From Dicyema japonicum (lineage: Eukaryota; Animalia; Dicyemida), in contig RDEW01000064.1 of NCBI GenBank assembly GCA_011109175.1, positions 1-64,000 of the forward strand: DNA of 64,000 bases, written 5' to 3'. The notes beneath the pieces were generated by a model. That model saw nothing but the letters and a program-made list of their open reading frames with translations, had not been told where the DNA came from and ran no database searches. Numbering within the stretch: position 1 is the stretch's first letter; each line of letters opens with the position of its first letter. Both the position numbers and the translations under genes were made by a program. Of the stretch, positions 211 through 63,300 are shown in pieces.

Positions 211-1151
211 ATGATAGTTGAGATTGTCGTATTATTTTTCACTATTAAATCAGGTAATTTTTATATTTTGATTAATAGCTCCTGAGTATCGTGTAGTAGG
301 TACAATCAAAGTATAAGCAATTAAAGTTATAATTAGAATTTAAAAAAAGTCAAACGTACTACATCTTTGACTACGAAAGGTATATAATGATAATTTCCGG
401 TAGCTTCTACTATTCCATTAACCAAAGGTATGATGAATGCTCATTTTAGTAGCTTCTACTACTCCGTCGACAGCAGGTATGATGAATAGTCATTTTAGTA
501 GCTTCTACTACTCCGTCGACAGCAGGTATGATGAATGGTCATTTCCGCTAGCTTCTACTACTCCGTCGACAGCAGGTATGATGAATGGTCATTTTACTAG
601 CTTCTACTATTCCGTCGACAGCAGGTATGATGAATGGTCATTTTACTAGATTTAACTCATCCAACAACAGCAGGTATTACGACAAGTAATTTACTTAAGA
701 TACTGCAAATGAATCCGAGAAATGTGTAATGTTTCGTGATATCCATTAGTTGATACTATTCTGCCAAAAGCAGGTATAGTCATGCATGATTCCCAGTCCT
801 TACTACTACTCCAAAAACAACGGTTATAACACCTCTTATAACTTCTACAGCAGGTTAATTTCATGTTAATTTTTTATACAAAATATATTTTCAAAATACT
901 GGTTTAAGTATATTTATGTATAGAAATTCCAACAGAATGTTTATTTATGAATTATATGTAGTGAAAGGGAACAACGATTCCGATTCAAAAAACACAGGTT
1001 TACGATCCAAGAATTTGGAAAAAATTGGTGAAAACGAAAAAACTACCTTTTCTAGTAAATTTAATATCAAATAGATAAATTATTTTATTTAGTGATTCCA
1101 GCGATCATTGTCATTATTCCTGTGGTCTATATTCTGCATAGGAATATTTAA
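211..1151 (+). CDS. Micro-exon-encoded type I membrane mucin-like protein (about 183-190 aa, 15-16 exons)
   Basis: Exons 211-253, 279-310, 337-379, eight 24-nt phase-1 exons (404-427, 453-476, 502-525, 552-575, 601-624, 650-673, 700-723, 750-773), 797-853, 924-938, 962-1054, 1075-1151; every intron GT-AG, 20-26 nt except 854-923. Spliced product: signal-like MIVEIVVLFFTIKSA, KKVKR, repeats ASTIPLTK/ASTTPSTA/DLTHPTTA, and C-terminal hydrophobic LFYLVIPAIIVIIPVVYIL before TAA. Confidence 0.75.
404..673 (+). repeat. Tandem 49-50-bp repeat whose unit is one 24-nt exon plus one 25-26-nt intron
   Basis: Unit cttctactactccgtcgacagcag|gtatgatgaatggtcattttactag present in four near-identical copies plus diverged copies on each side. 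Confidence 0.9.
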
Positions 1152-1989
1152 ACGAAAAAGAATAATGCTTTATTCAACAAAGTGGTCATTTTCTAAGTTA
1201 ACAGATTTATAATAATTTCAGATTGGAACTTGAATATCCAATTCTAATTTCGTTGATGATTTCGGTTACTAATAACATTACTTCTCTCTGGCTGTTATTA
1301 AAAAGTTAGTGAACTTGCAATTCTCTCGTTTTCATCAAGAGAGGCTTTTCCAATTTTTCATCCGCCTATCAGCTATTGTTAGTAAAATTAAGTACTTTCT
1401 TATTGAACCAATCTCCGAATAAAAATGAGGCCGATTAGAACTGGAAACCTAAATTCTTAGAAATCAACCAAACCTAGAGAGATCAGTCCTAAAAGACTAT
1501 TCGGAAAGCATCAAGGACTATAAACATAAGAATACAAGGTAAACCAATTTGACTGGAATCCCGACGACCTAAATTAAGATTTGCGAAACCTACACATGGA
1601 AATGGAAATTAGACTCAAAATGAACAGAGCTTGTTCACTTTGAGCATAAAACAGGCTGATCACGCGTTTAATTCTACAATTATCATCCTAGTGCCTCGTC
1701 AGTCATCTTCTGCTTCAGATTCCTAACAGACAAAAGATTGCATGTGGTATATTGGTAATATTGCCACTTGGTGAGAATCTTTGGCTCCCTTAGGTTAGGT
1801 AGCATTTGTATTAAATAATTGAAAAATCCGTGATCTAATACTTCCATGATAAGATATTGTCTCTGGCTTCAGCATGTAGGAAGCTCTGTCAGCATCATCA
1901 AAACGTACTTCAAAAATCAATTCATACGTTAGGTCCAGTTCATTAGAGTGATAGAAAACTTTTGATTTTTGCGTGTATATGATTCTAGA

Positions 1990-12449: not shown

Positions 12450-13400
12450 AAAGTGTCTGGATTACAAATTGTGATCCCGATGCGTTCCAGTAAAATCCTC
12501 ATCCTTTCCCGGTGCTTTCACCTCGTGCCCACACAAGCTCGTACTGGGCGGCTGACTGTATTTGCAGGGCCATTTTCTCGCATGCCGGAGTTTACTTTCA
12601 TGAGGGCCTCCAGAGTAGTCGGTCCGGTTCTGTGTCTCCCACAAGTCCACCGCTCGGTAACTCTGAAAGCCTTCTTTTGTACGTCCTCGATTTCTTAGTT
12701 TTCGTCATTGATAATGAAGGTCCCCACGAAGCACACGCGTACGAGAAGCATGGTTCAATGTATTGTTTGTAGATATTCATCAAGACCGGGTTCTACCGCT
12801 CGGTAACTCTGAAAGCCTTCTTTTGTACGTCCTCGATTTCTTAGTTTTCGTCAATGATAATGAAGGTCCCCACGAAGCACACGCGTACGAGAAGCATGGT
12901 TCAATGTATTGTTTGTAGATATTCATCAAGACCGGGTGGGTACCTGTCTTCCTTATTCCAGATAAACATTTCAATTGATTTTCTTCTCGCACTTCAGAAC
13001 AATGTTTGCCACGTGTGGTGACAAACATAAGTGCGTATCCAGTGTCACGCCTAGGATCTCCTGACATTTGCTGACGGGGATTTCAACGCTGTTCAATTTT
13101 AAGATGACAGTCTTCTTCCCCAACCTTTTGTCCGAAGTAAACATAGACGTGACCGACTTCTGGAATTTACCGTGAGTCGGTTCTTCATTACCCAGGCGTT
13201 GAGTCGGTCCAGATTAATTTGTAATCTTTCTGTAGAATTTTGTAATTTAATCTTCCAGGTATAAATTGAATAAAGCGTGATAAAGGAGATCCTTAGGGGA
13301 CACCGTTTGGGAAAAGAAGCGAGACTGATTTCAGTCCTCCGAGGCATACACGTCCCCTCAGTCCACTTAAGAAATTTGTTATCTAAAGTTTAAGCTTCTC
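12450..13400 (-). mobile_element. I/Jockey-group LINE RT fragment
   Basis: LQINLDRLNAWVMKNRLTVN and IYKQYIEPCFSYACASWGP, similar to 45266-46078. Confidence 0.7.
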
Positions 13401-16759: not shown

Positions 16760-17303
16760 ACACCTTTTGATTGAATCTNCCTTCACGTCTGGAAGATCTA
16801 TGGTCTGGGACGCAACTTGCATAGACACGTTCTCAAGCACGAACATTTTTAAATCTGTTCAGACACCTGGAGCAGCTGCTTCGACCGCGGAAAACCTAAA
16901 AATTAAGAAATATTCTTGCCTCGGGGATCGCTACCGATTTACTCCTGTTGCGACCGAATCATCGGGAGCCGTTGGTCCAATGACGGCTGAATTCTTGCAA
17001 GAACTCGGAGGATTGCTTGGCAGAAAGAAAAGGGATCAACGAGAAGGGTTATGGCTAAGACAAAAGATCGGAATAGCCATACTCCGAGGGAACTCGTTCG
17101 CAATCCACGCAGCAGGCTTCCTCAACTGACATTTGTTTAATTGTTAAAAAAAATTAATCATGGCAGAAAGAAAAGGGATCAACGAGAAGGGTTATGGCTA
17201 AGACAAAAGATCGGAATAGCCATACTCCGAGGGAACTCGTTCGCAATCCACGCAGCAGGTTTCCTCAACTGACATTTGTTTAATTGTTAAAAAAAATTAA
17301 TCA
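16760..17303 (+). mobile_element. CRE-clade 3' end; last 143 bp tandemly duplicated
   Basis: ORF 16767-17129: VWDATCIDT, FTPVATESSG, WLRQKIGIAILRGNS. Confidence 0.8.
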
Positions 17304-28479: not shown

Positions 28480-28990
28480 ATGTCCTTGAGAACTTTTTGG
28501 GGGCCTTCTTTGAACATCCTGACTTTGATGAAATCACTGCCAGGAGTTTATTCTTGACAGCTCTTTTGCCATCTTCAAATCTTCTAGATAGATCTCTATA
28601 AATGCTGTTTTCTCAACACTGGTTCATAACAAGGAGTTTATTCTTGACAGCTCTTTTGCCATCTTCAAATCTTCTAGATAGATCTCTATAAATGCTGTTT
28701 TCTCAACACTGGTTCATAACAAGGAGGTCAATGATTTTGGGAGAAAAGTCTAGGCGGTCCTGTAGATCTATGCATCTCCTCAGTTTATTCTTATCGACAC
28801 AATCTTCTTGATGTGCCAGGGAAAATGGACAACATAGTTTCTTTAGTATATTTTTCTGGCAACATTATCCAGACAGTATAATATCAGATCCGTTAATCGT
28901 TTACTTGTTTTATCAATTTCCAGAGGAATCTTGGGCTCACTGTGGCCTAACATTAACTCCTTTGCAATGAACATCCTATAGTCATGCCAG
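28480..28990 (-). mobile_element. R4-like element fragment
   Basis: Nucleotide similarity to 50290-50650; contains a 90-bp tandem duplication. Confidence 0.6.
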
Positions 28991-34620: not shown

Positions 34621-35121
34621 TTTTTTCCACGAGTTCATTCAAGGGATATTGGAAGTTATATTGACTTCATAAAAGATATTGTACGGGATTATAGTAAATC
34701 AAAACTTCATACAACAAGACAGCGGCCTTTTGAGATTATTACAACGTCAAACTAACAAAGCAATCAATCGATCAATTATTATTGGATTTAAATTAGGAGT
34801 AGGTTAAAGGTGAACACAAGAGGAGAGGCCATAATTAAAATTGGCAAGTAGTCCGACTCGCTGTAAAAAAGAGTCTCTCCTTTAGCTTTATATATTTTAT
34901 TATATAAAAAATTAAAATAACTACTTCCGATTTATGTGTTCGTACTCTCAACATAGAATCAATTGTAATAGCTTTTTCCTTTATAAAAGTGTCGTGGTTC
35001 TATAACACAAATTTTTATTATCACGTAAAAGTTAAATCAAAATTATTCAATGACTTAACATATCTTTAATTAAGTGTGGCTGCTCTAGAGTTAATATAAT
35101 GGAATTATAAATTTCAAAAAG

Positions 35122-35193
35122 TTTAGCGTCCGGGAATAGAACCCTGGTATCCGAAATGAAAATCCGAAATCTTAACCACTAGACCAACGCGGA
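35122..35193 (-). tRNA. tRNA-Glu(TTC), probably a pseudogene
   Basis: Minus strand TCCGCGTTGGTCTAGTGGTTAAGATTTCGGATTTTCATTTCGGATACCAGGGTTCTATTCCCGGACGCTAAA folds as a cloverleaf with anticodon TTC, but has two acceptor-stem mismatches and one T-stem mismatch. Confidence 0.7.
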
Positions 35194-35259: not shown

Positions 35260-35510
35260 TCATTTATATTTTCCTCGGACATTGTATTTTGAGAGGTGAC
35301 GCCGATGAAACCTGTATGTTTTCAAGCTCCTGTTTACTTTCCTTCAGGTTCACGTATAACAGAATGGATCGGATAAACGTTTTATAAAATTTAGTCCTAG
35401 TCCGAGTGAGATGTGCCTTCTTCGTACAAATATTCCAAATTTTCTTAAAGATAGTGCCCAGTAACTTCCTTCTGCTGATATCCCCGGGGTATCCCAAAGT
35501 GAGCAACGGG
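35260..35510 (-). mobile_element. LINE RT C-terminal fragment (RTE-like)
   Basis: LTRTRTKFYKTFIRSILLY. Confidence 0.4.
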
Positions 35511-37013
35511 AATTAAAAGTTAAATTATTATTTCTCAAACGTTCTTAATAATATAATCGTCAATATATCAGAATATGTTAGGGTACATAATATCTCTTTA
35601 CGGATATTTTTTTCAGTCAAGGTTCGCCGCGTGAGCAACGGGAATTAAAAGTTAAATTATTATTTCTCAAACGTTCTTAATAATATAATCGTCAATATAT
35701 CAGAATATGTTAGGGTACATAATATCTCTTTACGGATATTTTTTTCAGTCAAGGTTCGCCGCTCTCAGAATTGAAATCGCATTTCGTTTACGATTCGTAA
35801 AGAAATAGATTTATAAGCCTGTTCCTTTATCTCTTATTCTTTTTCCTCTTTACGACAGCGATCCAATGTGTTTCAGTAAGGTTAGTGATCTCCTTCTAAT
35901 GACTCCTCATGTTTCGAAGACGACTGGTCCAAAAATGAAATGTCCATCAGTAGATTATTATTCCTTTTTCACATCGATCCAATGCGTTTCAGTAAGGTTA
36001 GTGATCTCCTTCTAATGACTCCTGATGTTTCGAAGACGACTGGTCCAAAAATGAAATGTCCATCAGTAGATTAGTATTCCTTTTTCATTCATACAGTTTG
36101 AGACAGATGATCCTCCAAGTCCTTTCAATTTCGGGTCTGACAGAATTAGAACTTGTATACTTCATTCATAACAGGTTTTCTTAATATCAGAACATCAGAT
36201 TTCGGTTCTCCCAACTCCGTCACCTCTCCCTGACTCACAAGAAGGAAGGCTAATAAATTGACGCATGTGTTCGTAAATATCATAGAGTATTATTATTCCT
36301 GATATCCACGTATGTGAAGGAAACAATCAATTGAGGGTCATACATTAGCCTGCATGACTATTCCCTCTCTGGATGGCTAGTGAGACTCGCTCAAACGCCA
36401 ACAGCGTTCACGTAAATATCTTATTCGTGTAGAAGTCCGATTCTCTGACGACCCAGGAATTTCAGCGTCGAATATGGCCTGCTGTATTTGCATGTTGAGT
36501 TAACGGAAATTAGGTTTTTATGATCGATTTTGTTTTTCTCAGATAAATTAGTTATTTTTATTTTTACAAAAACACTAAGTTCTAATTATTGATCCTCCCA
36601 GACATAATTGACGCGGTCGGTTCAAATGGTAGTAATAGATATGAACTGGAATAGTCATTGAGTTTCATGGTTCGATTCTTACAACACTACCGACCTGGTC
36701 GTAGGATTCATTTTTGCCTATTGACTCCTTCAGAGTCATCACTTCATCCACATCTCTCAGGAGACGTCCATTTTCCAAAAAGGATTTTTCATCCTTACCC
36801 TACAAGAAAGGTTGCTACAATGGGGGATGTGGATAGACCTGGTGCCTTGAAAGGAAGCACTCATACCGTGGAAACTAGATTTACCTAATAAGCAATTTGT
36901 AGACTATCTTTTTTTTATTTTCAATTATTTATGATATGAATCCAGACTGTTGTTACCAAAAACGACATGTGTTGTATTTTTTATATATATTTGTGGTAAA
37001 GACAAGGAGACTA

Positions 37014-51900: not shown

Positions 51901-53149
51901 CAAGACGTTTGTCTGAGGTAAAAGGGATGTGGAGGACTTCTCAGGTGATATATCAAGTCTGTTGGATGACTATGGAATATAAGGATTTTGGTTAGAAATA
52001 AGATTTAGTTAATTTATTCAATTTAATTTATTTATTCAATTTTATTACGTATTTTGAATAATATATTAATTCTATTTTTAAATATTAAAAATTGGTTTAC
52101 AAAACCACTTACAAGACAACAAAATATAATAGGTAGGCTTTGAAAGAATTAAATGATGATTATAAAATCTTGAGTTATTTCAGGTTCTTTATCATAAATA
52201 TGTCAAATGGTTTGTTCTCAATGATGAATTATGGATAAGTTACATAATTATTTAGTTCATCAAAGAGGCAGTGGAAAATGAGAATACTCCATTGCACGAT
52301 TGAAACTTCAATCGATTTTTCACACCTATTCCTCTGGAGAAAAATATAAACGAAAAATTGTTTCATGAAATCTGAAATTAATGTCATGAATTAGCAAACG
52401 TTCGTCCACAATCCCAAGACTGACCCCATTGCACGATTGAAACTTCAATCGATTTTTCACACCTATTCCTCTGGAGAAAAATATAAACGAAAAATTGTTT
52501 CATGAAATCTGAAATTAATGTCATGAATTAGCAAACGTTCGTCCACAATCCCAAGACTGACCGACCGCATTTTCTACGTCCTATTTAATAGCTGCTGGCC
52601 TCCTACAAATTAGTGAGGCTTTTTCTTTATGGAAATTGCACAAAGTGCATAAAAAAATGGACTCCCGAAGATGAATTACCAACAAATCGGACCTTTTCTC
52701 GAGGAGCCAATATCTGACTAACTCTGTTTTCTTAAACATATCCAGCCTGCTAAAGTCCAAGAAAATACCACTTAGGAATCCGAAAGCCGTTCGCATCCAT
52801 GCCGCTTAATGTCTATCTTCACTTTTCGACGATGCACTCATATCGAACTTTGAAGGTTCTTGGATACAAGAAAATACCACTTAGGAATCCGAAAGCCGTT
52901 CGCATCCATGCCGCTTAATGTCTATCTTCACTTTTCGACGATGCACTCATATCGAACTTTGAAGGTTCTTGGATATGAATACTGATCCTTGCTCATCTCG
53001 CTTTTGGCCTCTCAATCAATGAATCTACAAATAAATGACCACGGCCAAACTAAAGCCATACGTTCTGGAGGTACACATGAGTTAAACATTCATCAAGAAT
53101 GAAGAAGAATATTCAGACTATTTAAGAACACAACCTCTCCAACATTCAG

Positions 53150-54889: not shown

Positions 54890-56690
54890 AACTAATCAGT
54901 TTTCATCTTGTTAAGTGGGACCGTCGATAGTACTTTTTTCCGGGTAATGTCCTCACTGTCTCCGAGGAGAGAGTCGAGCTTTCTGGAACGTCTCCATCCC
55001 TCTTCCAATCTTGATCCCATGTGTACGATTTCCACAAAATCAGTTTTAGTTGTAAATTCGGCTTGTTCCGTAGCGTCAAAAATCACATTCCCTTCGTTAT
55101 CCTGAATTTTTAGTATGCCCTTTTGGTTCCTCCTCTTAAGCAGGCGCATTGCCAAAAACATCTGCCCACAATCATTTAGATTTTCCACTTCCTTTAGCCT
55201 GCCATCCAAAACGTTTGCTACATGTTCAATGTTTAATTTTCTGATTTTTCTCTGTATTATAGTACGTTCCGACTGTAAAAAGCATTTCCTTTCTGTGTTC
55301 GTCATGTTTTCTAGCGATAGTCGAAGATTCTTCTGTGTTGCAGCAAGTGCGGGAACCTCGTTCTGTATTATAGTACGTTCCGACTGTAAAAAGCATTTCC
55401 TTTCTGTGTTCGTCATGTTTTCTAGCGATAGTCGAAGATTCTTCTGTGTTGCAGCAAGTGCGAGAACATCGGGGTGGCCCTGCTCGGAACCTCGTGCGTT
55501 GTGCTGCCGCCTCCCAATATGTTCGTCTGCAGCCATGTGAATTCTTTCCATTGTAAGCGTCCAAGTGACTCCCGGTGGAAAGCCTGCTTCTATTGCTTGT
55601 AGATTATGTTCCATGGATGCTTGAGAGATATTTCGATGACATAATCTCTCGACCTGGTATCGTCTCCGTATGACCTAAGATGGCTTTGTTCCTGAAGTGC
55701 GTGCAAAGAGACTTGTAATATCAAACAGGGCCACTACGATCTTGTGATCGCTTTCTACGACGGCACCTCCGTATGACCTCGAGTCCCGTAGTGTTCTATC
55801 TTTCTGTCGGCAAAGAATGTAATCAATCTAATTGTAAATCATCACATGGCCCCCAGATTCATTTCTTCAGAATGTAATCAATCTGATTGTAAATCATCAC
55901 ATGGCCCACAGATTCATTTCTTCAGAATGTAATCAATCTAATTGTAAATCATCACATGGCCCCCAGATTCATTTCTTCAGCAGCTCGTCCAGGTAGTCTT
56001 ATGTCGTGCGGCATGCGTAGACGCAGTGTTACACAGGAATAGACCAAATGCCCGGCAGAAATTTATCAGCACAGCCCCCGGCAGGTTCCTGATACCTCTT
56101 CCGTGTCTTCCGATAATCGACTCATGTTCCCGACGTACTCCTGCTGTAGCATTCCAGTCTCCGGCAATGAAAACTAGAAAAGACGATTCCAGCTCGGCAT
56201 ATGTCCTCGACAGCTGCACGTAGAAAGCGTCAAGTTCGTCCGAATCTTTGGCGACCCGTCCACTGTGGATTGCTTAAACATTTATAATTGAGATAAGGGC
56301 CCTCGACGTGCTTTTGACCCCAACTCGTATTTGCAGTATGCTGACTCTGTCGTTAACACTGCAACACCGACTTATCCCACGAACAAGTTTCTTGTGCACG
56401 ACAAATCCCTGTCCATAGTGTCTTAATGACGATGGTAGTAAAATGAGTCTATAGTCTCCATGTAGCTCGTCCATTCCAGCCAGTACTTTTGTCTCTTGTA
56501 GGCATCCCACGTCTGCACCATATCTCCCCAGATCCGAACAATGCAGGTTTCTTTTCCACTCCTTGCTGATCCCTCTTACATTGAAAGATGTTATCTTAAG
56601 CTCCTCCAAGCGGTTTAAGTGCGTTTCAGAGATTTGTGCAATAGAGATGTCGTCACCACCTCAACCAAAAATGATTTCATTCATAATACA
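54890..56690 (-). mobile_element. Degenerate RTE-clade LINE related to 13520-15262
   Basis: LKITSFNVRGIS, GCLQETKV, IAGDWNA, FLCNT..HAARHKTTW; 5' region similar to 13530-13555. Confidence 0.85.
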
Positions 56691-60309: not shown

Positions 60310-63300
60310 TTAATCGAAAATAACATCAGGAAACCAATGCTCAATAACATCATGCGACAAATACTTTGTCCCTTTGATCACCTACCATACAATCATCACT
60401 TACTTTCCCTAAACACATCTTCATCATTGTGGAAGTATCAATCTCACACAGTATAGACGACGTCATCTACGTCACAACACAAACTACCAGTAAAAACAAC
60501 TTCATCAGATTCTCAATCTCATCTCCCTTAGATTCTTCCTCCGACAAAAGAGCGGGAAAAAACGTGCGAATAAACAATGAAATCGTATCAAAATTATTCG
60601 AAAATCCCCGGTATTCCTCATAATATCTAACACCAACGTGACAACACGGACGGGTCAAACAAACAGCAATGAGGACCACCAGAGAGTGAATCATGTTATG
60701 TTTGCTCATCCCTCCCCACTCTACCAATCACCCAACTCATACTGTTGCACGTGTCATTCAGAAACAACACCAACTCCTCGTCAGAGAAAGGCAACAGACT
60801 CGTCACAATCTAAGTCACCACCATAACTACAGAATCCCTACAACAGTCCTCTGCTAACTCTGCCAGTCCAGGACGCGTGGTTGAATACACCCTATTCACC
60901 ACCGACATTAAAATCTCCCGGTAGTGCAACAGCAGACTCGACAGTACCAGTCGGTTAAAGATGGCGTCCATTTCTAAGGTAACTCAGGGACCAACCTTTC
61001 CGACGGTTCTCTAAAATAAATCCACTCCTTACTCTGAAAATTCTTAATAGACTCAATCAGCAGTACGTGGTCTCCCACAGAATTACAGATGTGTACAACC
61101 TCTGACTGCAATTGAACGGCAACTTTCTGACATTATTTCCTACTCTACCATTATCTCATTGAATTGATCCAGCACGTGGGCAAAAACCTTTTCCATCAAG
61201 TATTCCATGCCACGTAACCCCATCAGCAAACACAATGCCTCCATCTCTACCATTACCACACTCCAACCTTGTCGTGATGTGTATTCCTCCAAGTCGAACA
61301 CGTGAGCACCCTCATTTGCACACAACCCCACGAAACAGTCACAGGAGAACGAGTATATCATTTCCCTCCGAGCCAACGCCTTCAGCAGAAAGTCAACGTA
61401 CCTAAGTAACCCCCACGTTACTACCACGCCGTCATTCTCTGCTGTAGAGGCGGTAGGTCCCCAATCTCAGTACAGTTCACCCACAGCTCATTATTAAGTG
61501 AGTCCATACCACGTGTCCAGCCAACTAGGAATAAAAGAACCCCTTACAGACAGCATCAACTTGCACAACCACATCAATGAGGACGGATTTCCTCAAGTTC
61601 ACTTGTGAGGGAAGACAAGTGATCATTGCAGCATTGCTTTGATACGAACTTTCATCTATCAGTCTTAAGAGGAGGGGACTGAGGGCGCTCTCAAACTGCT
61701 TTCCGTGATGTTCCGTCGCGAATCTACGGAAAGTCCTTGACAGGGCGGTGATAGATGTCATAAGGTTGGACCTACTGTGACCATAATAACCCACGTGGTT
61801 CAAAGTACTCTTTATTGTTGGATAAAGATATCTCAGACTTGCTTTTCGACTGCTTCCCGTATATGTGACCCATCATTCTCTGTCCCAACACGGCGGGATC
61901 CAAAGCCTTTATCAACCCACGTGTCACCTGTTCTGTAAACTTCAGCCTATTGTAGTAGACGTTCTCGATATACTGAACCAAGGAGAAAACCACGTTCTCC
62001 AGAAATTTATCACAGAGACTTTCTGCTAGGGTTATCAATGGAAATTGCTTGTGTTACCACCAGCTACCTCCTCAGGACAAAGCACGTGGAAGCAGGTTCC
62101 CACTCCCTCTGTAAGTCGAAGGTAGCCACCAATGTAGTTGATTCTGCTTATTCTGGAGAGACACAGAAAGAACTGGTGCTCTATCAGGTTGGGGGTGTGG
62201 CTAAATCACGGAAAAGGCTTACAAATATGTGGAGAGGTCACAGACACGTGCCAGAAATTCGGGGTATGCGTTAACAGCCATGTTTATGGAAGAGGGTCTG
62301 ACAGGAGAGCAGGTACAGGGATCCCCTTTAAGGAGCAATTCCCCTGAGCCATAGACAAAACATACTCGCAGTCATCTACATGTCCCTCACGGAATGCCGT
62401 CTCCAATCGTACGCAGATGTCCAGTCCACATGGAGTTGACAAAGTCAGACTTGTCGTCCAACTCTCCCTCAAATTTAATCTTTTTCCCGCCACTGAGCAT
62501 ATTAAGCCCCAAAATGAGTCTTATTTCGTCCGTTGCATACAGCAGGATCTTAGTCACGGAAGGTAACTACAACACATGTAACCAGTACCTCACGGTAGAT
62601 ATTGTTGGACAGCTGGGCATTGACCTCCTCCATCATACCCAGAAGGAGTGTCCTTCTCTCCCTTATCATAGTCAAACTGGAGATCAGTCACAACAATACT
62701 AGTTGGTGGGGAAATTCAAGGATTTGAACTCGGTGGAGAGCTTGGGAGGCAGTTGTCTAAATATAAAAGGTTACCAACAATTTGATGGCAGTAAAACATC
62801 GAACACAAAGATCTTGGGAAAACCTGACCTTGTCCCTGATGAGACAGACCAGAGGGAATGCTCTAACTGTGTTGATGAGGATCGAAGACAGAGATTCCTC
62901 CGTTAGTTCCGTGGCTATTCCGATGAGGGACACTTGGGATTAAAAAATTTGTTACGGATAATCAGTCTAGAGAGGCTAAAGGGGGTCAAACCGTTGAGCT
63001 CCGTCTAAATCTGAGACCACTTGATCACCCAAGTGATGGATTCGAAGTGAGAAGTGTCAATTTTAAGGAAATTCATCTTCATGTTCTTTTCGGTTGAAAT
63101 CACACAATTTCGGATCGCCTGACCAAAGAAGAAGACCTCCTTCCGGATTTTGCAGTAGGGGGCGTCGACCTCGTTCAGTAACCGGATCAACGCGCTAAAC
63201 TGGGAGTCCCTGAAGCTTAGAGGAACAAATACTGAATCTTTTCCCCATGAATACACAAATGACAGTAGTAGTAGAGGACGACCACGTGCTTAAGGTTAGG

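Follow-up and report, generated by a model that had tools for sequence, protein, structure and literature searches.

The locus occupies positions 211-1151 of the forward strand of the window, that is, the whole 64-kb stretch of Dicyema japonicum DNA that was analyzed. A spliced reading frame can be followed there from an ATG at 211 to a TAA at 1149-1151, with a predicted 14 exons, a coding sequence of 480 nt, and a product of 159 aa. The exons and introns given for 211-1151 are predictions from the DNA sequence. Among the 13 predicted GT..AG introns, 11 measure 23-26 nt, 10 start with GTA, and 10 end with TAG; all 26 splice dinucleotides are intact. The 12 internal exons of the model all fall between 24 and 57 nt, and 10 of them are multiples of 3 with phase 1-1. 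Single exons encode at most 19 aa each, the last exon 25 aa. The mechanical ORF list contains nothing at the locus but a 70-aa unspliced read-through at 437-649. The predicted features, together with one discrepancy between the assembly and public reads, are:

211-253 (+): exon 1, 43 nt, with the ATG and a hydrophobic, signal-peptide-like N-terminus, MIVEIVVLFFTIKS; ends in phase 1, with a GTA donor next to it
254-278 (+): intron 1, 25 nt, GTA..TAG
279-310 (+): exon 2, 32 nt, phase 1 to 0, length not a multiple of 3
311-336 (+): intron 2, 26 nt, GTA..TAG
337-379 (+): exon 3, 43 nt, phase 0 to 1, length not a multiple of 3; NLKKVKR with a dibasic site, then TTSLTTK
380-403 (+): intron 3, 24 nt, a multiple of 3; retention would give an in-frame TAA as the second codon
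404-427 (+): micro-exon ASTIPLTK, 24 nt, phase 1-1; followed by intron 428-452, 25 nt, with a TAGTAG end
453-476 (+): micro-exon ASTTPSTA, 24 nt (27 nt from 450 if the first TAG is the acceptor); followed by intron 477-501, 25 nt, with a TAGTAG end
502-525 (+): micro-exon ASTTPSTA, 24 nt (27 nt from 499 if the first TAG is the acceptor); followed by intron 526-551, 26 nt
552-575 (+): micro-exon ASTTPSTA, 24 nt; followed by intron 576-600, 25 nt
601-624 (+): micro-exon ASTIPSTA, 24 nt; followed by intron 625-649, 25 nt
650-673 (+): diverged micro-exon DLTHPTTA, 24 nt, 16/24 identity to the repeat exon; followed by intron 674-699, 26 nt
700-723 (+): diverged micro-exon DTANESEK with an NES sequon, 24 nt, 9/24 identity to the repeat exon; followed by intron 724-749, 26 nt, GTG..TAG
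750-773 (+): diverged micro-exon FDTILPKA, 24 nt; followed by intron 774-796, 23 nt
797-853 (+): exon for a Thr/Pro-rich 19-mer, VLTTTPKTTVITPLITSTA, 57 nt, phase 1-1
854-961 (+): long intron, 108 nt, a multiple of 3; retention would give an immediate in-frame TAA (second codon)
962-997 (+): exon for VKGNNDSDSKNT, with an NDS sequon, 36 nt, phase 1-1
998-1074 (+): intron, 77 nt in the original prediction
1075-1151 (+): last exon as assembled, encoding DK, the 19-residue hydrophobic helix LFYLVIPAIIVIIPVVYIL, HRNI, and the TAA stop
1147-1212 (+): assembly/read discrepancy; one T of the T-run at 1147 is missing at full depth in the read sets X1 to X4

The central pattern can be read directly from the sequence, in agreement with the original prediction: eight 24-nt phase 1-1 segments lie at 404-773 (+), separated and flanked by GT..AG segments of 24, 25, 25, 26, 25, 25, 26, 26, and 23 nt, in this order. 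The earlier description of all eight as exactly 24 nt long is secure for six; the other two may be 27 nt because of TAGTAG acceptors. Use of the first TAG at the ends of introns 428-452 and 477-501 would shorten these introns to 22 nt, lengthen the exons to 27 nt, and add one Val, with the frame kept. The micro-exons had been placed between a signal-peptide exon and a transmembrane exon. Both ends of this arrangement are retained in our model, and four more exons (279-310, 337-379, 797-853, and 962-997) lie between them.

To define the 5′ part, we enumerated every open GT..AG path from the ATG at 211 to the donor at 380. The combination of exons 211-253, 279-310, and 337-379 was the sole route out of 24 in which both introns are 25-26 nt long and of the GTA..TAG type. 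An alternative consisting of exon 279-299 and intron 300-336 was discarded because it is out of frame. An in-frame TAG occupies 208-210, directly 5′ of the ATG; it resembles the other acceptors, and an intron in the 5′-UTR is a conceivable possibility. The 3′ part is more ambiguous, and the atypical length and uncertain boundaries of the 108-nt and 77-nt introns count against the gene model. No path built solely of introns of up to 45 nt spans 854-961. An alternative found by hand may divide this stretch into an intron at 854-908 (55 nt), an exon at 909-938 (30 nt), and an intron at 939-961 (23 nt). Further downstream, the frame is open through 998-1054, so that the penultimate exon can end at 997, 1027, or 1054. 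The last intron would then alternatively cover 1028-1074 (47 nt) or 1055-1074 (20 nt, GTA..TAG), and the 20-nt choice adds 19 aa. An intron of 20 nt suits this genome better than one of 77 nt.

The spliced product would contain, in order, a hydrophobic 14-mer, APEYRVVGTIKNLKKVKR, the 8-residue modules, the Thr/Pro-rich 19-mer, VKGNNDSDSKNT, the 19-residue helix, and HRNI. The module ASTTPSTA occurs three times. As originally proposed, the 480-nt spliced frame is open, rich in Thr, Ser, and Pro, and contains KVKR, NES, and NDS. Ser, Thr, and Pro together make up 47% of the 120-aa ectodomain, and Thr is the commonest residue overall (33 of 159). According to a hydropathy heuristic, a hydrophobic 11-mer directly follows the initiator Met, and cleavage is possible after Ser14; the Kyte-Doolittle mean for residues 1-12 is 2.6-2.9. 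The shortness of the hydrophobic stretch (14 aa), the lack of a basic n-region, and Glu4 inside the stretch count against a signal peptide. The C-terminal helix, a 19-residue window with a Kyte-Doolittle mean of up to 2.84, is the single one and is followed by positive charges, either HRNI or, in the read-supported allele, HRNIKRKR and further residues. In the assembly version the chain ends four residues past the helix, which could also fit a GPI-anchor signal. The KRKR directly after the helix in the read-supported version fits the positive-inside rule for an N-out/C-in orientation. Small type I sialomucin-like membrane glycoproteins such as glycophorin A, podoplanin, and CD164 combine a signal peptide, a short Ser/Thr/Pro-rich ectodomain, one helix, and a short basic tail in approximately 130-200 aa, and they are encoded by ordinary exon structures. 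The predicted product is similar to these proteins in architecture; this is a likeness by description, for which no relationship in sequence is expected, and its glycosylation is suggested by composition.

Tandem Repeats Finder (TRF) detected a 49-nt tandem repeat at 400-677 (+) with 5.7 copies and 88% match, whose unit corresponds to a 24-nt exon plus an intron of about 25 nt. Five of the eight micro-exon units are copies of this one recent repeat, in which exon and intron were duplicated jointly. They are therefore counted once and not as independent observations. The diverged units at 650-796 have only 9-16 of 24 exon bases in common with the repeat, yet they retain exactly 24 nt and the GT/AG ends. 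Where units differ in length, the difference always lies in the intron. The repeat exon can be read without a stop in all three frames. With introns of about 25 nt, open spliced paths arise easily, and the odds that a random 49-mer repeat allows an in-frame GT..AG parse are considerable.

We therefore evaluated the locus with the four duplicate units (453-649) removed, using as statistic the number of 22-27-nt GT..AG introns that can be chained in an open path with exons of 20-60 nt. The observed chain begins exactly at the ATG at 211 and comprises 7 introns when collapsed in this way and 11 when uncollapsed. In 300 dinucleotide shuffles, chains anchored at the ATG reached a maximum of 4, as compared to the real 7, and unanchored chains reached a maximum of 6, once. 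The reverse strand gave a chain of only 1-2, and a gene on that strand was ruled out on this basis. Real 764-nt tiles from the rest of the window reached a chain of at least 7 in 3 of 326 cases. A strict scan of the 64 kb on both strands for arrays of 12-30-nt exons with lengths divisible by 3 found 9 units at the locus versus at most 5 elsewhere; with the four duplicates removed, about 5 units remained, which does not exceed the background maximum. Another statistic, "maximum coding length", was dropped for its poor discrimination (272 nt, as compared to 133 nt on average in shuffles, with an s.d. of 53 and values up to 314; the collapse was off by one base).

Exons and introns also differ in composition. 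With duplicates and GT/AG dinucleotides removed, and with boundaries that had been chosen without regard to composition, C amounts to 19-23% in the exons versus 10-11% in the introns (Fisher p = 0.0005-0.003); exons are thus rich in C and introns in T. The two introns with lengths divisible by 3 (24 and 108 nt) would each yield a stop in the second codon on retention. In a census of GTA..TAG spacings across the window, lengths of 20-27 nt were not enriched. Around a transposon in the window, Pfam scans of ORF pieces gave only reverse-transcriptase pieces on the forward strand and nothing on the reverse strand, and hence no homology-verified intron; the introns were calibrated with literature values. 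Neither blastn, tblastn, nor a pattern search for the intron detected paralogues of the locus within the 64-kb window. The window is repeat-rich, with ORFs for reverse transcriptase, AP endonuclease, and FLYWCH as well as one tRNA, and its GC content is 33-45% in most 2-kb bins.

Public reads were used for comparison. The runs X1 to X4 derive from one 2019 sample, and their contigs were compared with positions 1-2000. They represent genomic DNA: the contigs are collinear through every predicted intron and the intergenic sequence, at even depth and with no spliced joint. Run X5 (2017, same species label) contains almost none of the words of the locus, though about one fifth of these lie in exons of at least 31 nt. 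If X5 is RNA, the gene is poorly expressed in it. Without the extra T at 1147, the frame continues to a stop ending at 1212 and gains the tail HRNIKRKRIMLYSTKWSFSKLTDL, 23 aa that begin with KRKR directly after the helix. With this read-supported tail and the alternative 20-nt last intron, the protein would be about 182-201 aa long.

The reads further revealed units that are absent from the assembly. In one contig of X1, position 652 is followed by 17 other letters and then by sequence from 522 onward, which corresponds to a form about three units longer. The insert together with its flanking bases forms an extra exon variant of exactly 24 nt, DSIDSSFA, with an open frame in phase 1. A second 24-nt in-frame exon variant (xSTDSSLA) occurs in loose ends of X1 and X2. 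The longer form and both variants are either alleles of the locus or paralogues. Summed over the contigs, the depth at 537-603 reaches 19-25 times the flanking level, a value that does not represent a copy number; clearly, many variant units exist beyond the 5.7 assembled copies. None of the allelic differences hits a splice dinucleotide, and the variants at 398 and 400 leave the terminal TAG of intron 380-403 in place. The contig over 800-1061 has one base unlike the assembly, and that over 1052-1286 has no base differences and two one-base gaps. In the downstream flank (1289-1900), the haplotypes are 5-9% apart, and the 3′ half of the gene is thus far less polymorphic. Five of the six allelic differences in coding sequence are nonsynonymous, which counts against protein constraint.

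We consider it probable (about 0.7) that the locus is a lineage-specific gene for a mucin-like type I membrane protein, with a stalk that gains and loses length at the DNA level through 49-nt exon-plus-intron cassettes, each spliced to 8 codons. Such a protein would begin with a short, cleavable, signal-like N-terminus, followed by KVKR as a possible dibasic site for processing, the stalk, a single transmembrane helix, and a basic tail in the cytoplasm. The stalk would measure about 100 aa, rich in Thr, Ser, and Pro and presumably O-glycosylated; its 24-nt exons would each specify a single 8-residue module and precede a GTA..TAG intron of 23-26 nt. Exon and intron together span only 49 nt and would thus be duplicated and deleted together, gained or lost as a minisatellite by replication slippage or unequal crossing-over. 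Since 25 nt are spliced out, even a repeat length not divisible by 3 would add or remove exactly 8 codons. Variation in stalk length and sequence would consequently be mostly genomic, distinguishing alleles or paralogues. Splicing, if it takes place as predicted, would most likely be constitutive by intron definition, with at most a wobble of the NAGNAG type. The original proposal that every module can be lost or duplicated with the frame preserved is arithmetically correct, given that all are phase 1-1. Going beyond this, the cassettes might be expandable, always-in-frame modules by which the mucin stalk of a parasite surface varies between individuals through gain and loss and within an individual through NAGNAG choice or occasional skipping; we regard this extension as tentative and rather unlikely.

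One alternative to a gene would be a non-coding 49-nt minisatellite in AT-rich intergenic DNA, for which the exon/intron reading is a chance parse under permissive micro-intron rules. It would account for the plain 49-nt array reported by TRF and for the three open frames of the repeat "exon"; moreover, the longest chains in shuffled sequences reach 4-6, and micro-exon chains of 4-5 occur elsewhere in the window. A plain minisatellite would, however, carry no constraint beyond the repeat itself, and we found that the parse and the frame reach unique sequence on both sides. Outside the repeat they cover about 500 nt, as far as an ATG and hydrophobic N-terminus at one end and a transmembrane helix with a stop at the other, and none of 300 start-anchored shuffles reached 7 introns. 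In addition, indels occur only in the "introns", the composition contrast is significant at p ~0.001, and the variants in the reads keep 24 nt and an open frame. We therefore judge a chance parse to be improbable. A gene that once functioned is a different matter: the locus could be a silent or decaying pseudogene copy from a larger family of dicyemid mucin-like cassettes, its structure being real and its expression lost. The depth excess at 537-603 and the many variant units that map there, with related units probably located elsewhere, agree with such a family, and decay would be compatible with the predominance of nonsynonymous allelic differences and the transposon-rich surroundings. Against decay, the assembly and the read-supported allele both keep an intact frame across 14 exons, the 26 splice dinucleotides are intact as well, and the 3′ half is much less variable than the flank. 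On balance, a pseudogene seems very improbable to us.

The remaining alternative accepts the gene and shifts diversification to the RNA, where symmetric 24-nt exons would be skipped and combined into a repertoire of surface isoforms resembling the variable antigens encoded by the micro-exon genes (MEGs) of schistosomes. There are arguments in its favor: exon skipping in MEGs and splice variants of SmPoMuc are documented in flatworms (PMC2576457; bioRxiv 10.1101/2023.06.21.545858), and the eight micro-exons as well as the 57-nt and 36-nt exons are all phase 1-1, so that any subset can be dropped in frame. The splice sites of the repeated units are identical, and only distance distinguishes correct pairing from skipping; skipping of one exon corresponds to a 74-nt "intron", which is within the range of the 77-nt and 108-nt introns of the model. 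Five modules, however, encode nearly one and the same 8-residue sequence, and skipping them would alter the length of the protein but leave its epitopes as they are. Such variation as can be seen lies in the genome, and the antigen framing is weakened by the host, a cephalopod, which lacks adaptive immunity. In genomes dominated by very short introns, splice sites are paired across the intron, and the usual alternative event is intron retention rather than exon skipping. RNA-level diversification is thus disfavored on general grounds, and we consider it quite unlikely.

The preferred reading, a mucin-like gene with cassettes that vary in the DNA, has a close known counterpart in the polymorphic mucins (SmPoMuc) of Schistosoma mansoni. 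Like the locus as predicted, SmPoMuc specifies a Ser/Thr/Pro-rich repeat protein with one short repeat per small exon (27 bp in SmPoMuc; PMC2576457). In both cases, exon and flanking intron form the genomic tandem-repeat unit, and the repeat number of SmPoMuc varies by recombination (PMC2576457). The scale differs: the SmPoMuc unit, which includes microsatellite spacers and introns of about 550 bp, measures about 1 kb, compared to 49 nt here, which is roughly one twentieth (PMC2576457). Furthermore, SmPoMuc is a secreted protein with a conserved C-terminal domain, encoded by 15 exons and with demonstrated RNA-level variants, whereas our locus has a transmembrane end and 14 predicted exons and is known from DNA. 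The conserved C-terminal domain of SmPoMuc is not present in the predicted product, which ends in a helix and a short tail.

A similar comparison can be made with the MEGs. These share with the predicted gene a coding sequence that resides mostly in very short, largely symmetric exons between signal-peptide and terminal exons, and they are missed by automatic ORF and gene finders (bioRxiv 10.1101/2023.06.21.545858). MEG micro-exons are 6-81 nt long and mostly multiples of 3, as are those of the predicted model. MEG introns, in contrast, span 0.1-5 kb, whereas 11 of the 13 introns at the locus have 23-26 nt and the longest has 108 nt (bioRxiv 10.1101/2023.06.21.545858). MEGs occur in Schistosomatidae only, encode secreted proteins, consist of exons that are mostly not tandem duplicates, and have been shown by cDNA to undergo skipping; the locus consists of tandem cassettes in a non-schistosome genome. 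As it lacks the long introns of MEGs and SmPoMuc and probably does not share their descent, the locus would work like both and is probably a member of neither.

The intron lengths agree with what has been reported for dicyemids. Among animals, introns shorter than 30 nt have been published only for myxobolid myxozoans and D. japonicum, and the signals of the latter are reduced to GTa and AG (PMC13644364). In Dicyema sp., the median intron length is 27 bp, and two thirds of the introns are shorter than 30 bp (PMC6543705). The D. japonicum assembly has 36.7% GC, 49% repeats, 5,012 genes, and a mean exon length of 198 bp (PMC6736024). The GC content and repeat load of the window are in line with this genome, as are the years of the runs, whereas Henneguya has a GC content of 29%. 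The introns of Dicyema and the myxobolids resemble those of the locus in length (20-27 nt) and in the GTa...AG signals, but the published ones lie between ordinary exons. These three publications (PMC13644364, PMC6543705, PMC6736024) describe no array whose exons match the introns in shortness and whose exon-plus-intron unit behaves as a minisatellite. What is new is the scale, with exon and intron both at about 24-25 nt and arranged in series; the principle of one repeat per mini-exon is already that of SmPoMuc.

Overall, the gene prediction is well supported by the sequence, and a role at the host interface or as an antigen is speculative. Exons of about 24 nt need special help for inclusion in vertebrates. 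If the locus is spliced as predicted, exon and intron could each approach about 24 nt in series, which would provide a natural test of the steric limits on spliceosome assembly. Should the cassettes indeed serve as expandable modules, 24-nt exons flanked by 25-nt introns would alternate more tightly than exons and introns known from any other animal and would test how closely spaced spliceosomes can be on one pre-mRNA. Predicted splicing would also mean that repeat units whose length is not a multiple of 3 can build tandem-repeat proteins, with the intron travelling along with the exon. Animals with micro-introns would, on the same condition, possess a class of secreted or surface proteins that is invisible to ORF finders and masked as "satellite". 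Such hidden genes would then bear on the low gene count of Dicyema (5,012 genes in an assembly with 49% repeats; PMC6736024).

Apart from the predicted mucin-like membrane gene with its 24-nt exons and ~25-nt introns, seven to nine short GT..AG introns could be chained in an open path in only three other tiles (764-nt pieces) of the window:

61657-62420, + strand, short-intron-chain tile
62421-63184, - strand, short-intron-chain tile
44467-45230, - strand, short-intron-chain tile

On the - strand around 44.5-45.6 kb, Pfam scans of ORF pieces returned no domain. The Pfam family HtrL_YibB, described as bacterial, was matched (E = 9e-7) by an intact 242-aa ORF (41768-42496, - strand) within this animal-like genome. 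A degenerate interstitial array of TTAGGG-like, telomere-type repeats (46414-46682) adjoins a reverse-transcriptase-bearing element, and a single tRNA-Glu (TTC) gene (35121-35193, - strand) lies in otherwise transposon-rich surroundings.

The window also contains 11 tandem duplications, 90-170 nt long, in which a unit occurs exactly 2.0 times at 96-100% identity. Rather than biological features, they look like artefacts of the assembly, either contig overlaps left unmerged or products of gap closing.

Two-copy tandem duplications
1: 12649-12937
2: 17018-17303
3: 28542-28726
4: 35499-35762
5: 35855-36087
6: 39307-39487
7: 42942-43280
8: 47378-47635
9: 52289-52562
10: 52758-52975
11: 55251-55471

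In all four DNA runs (X1-X4, from one sample), the contigs had, at full depth, one T fewer than the assembly in the T-run starting at 1147. The extra T is an error of the assembly or else a rare allele, and it alters the predicted C-terminus of the mucin-like protein: its tail comprises 4 residues with the assembly T-run versus 27 with that of the DNA contigs.

Downstream of the gene, at 1289-1976, the DNA contigs fell into two haplotypes differing by 5-9%, each at about half depth. A 69-nt indel (1878-1946) with AG..AG ends was likewise present at about half depth in X1-X4, if less clearly in X3. The DNA sample of X1-X4 is clearly polymorphic, and it perhaps represents pooled individuals.
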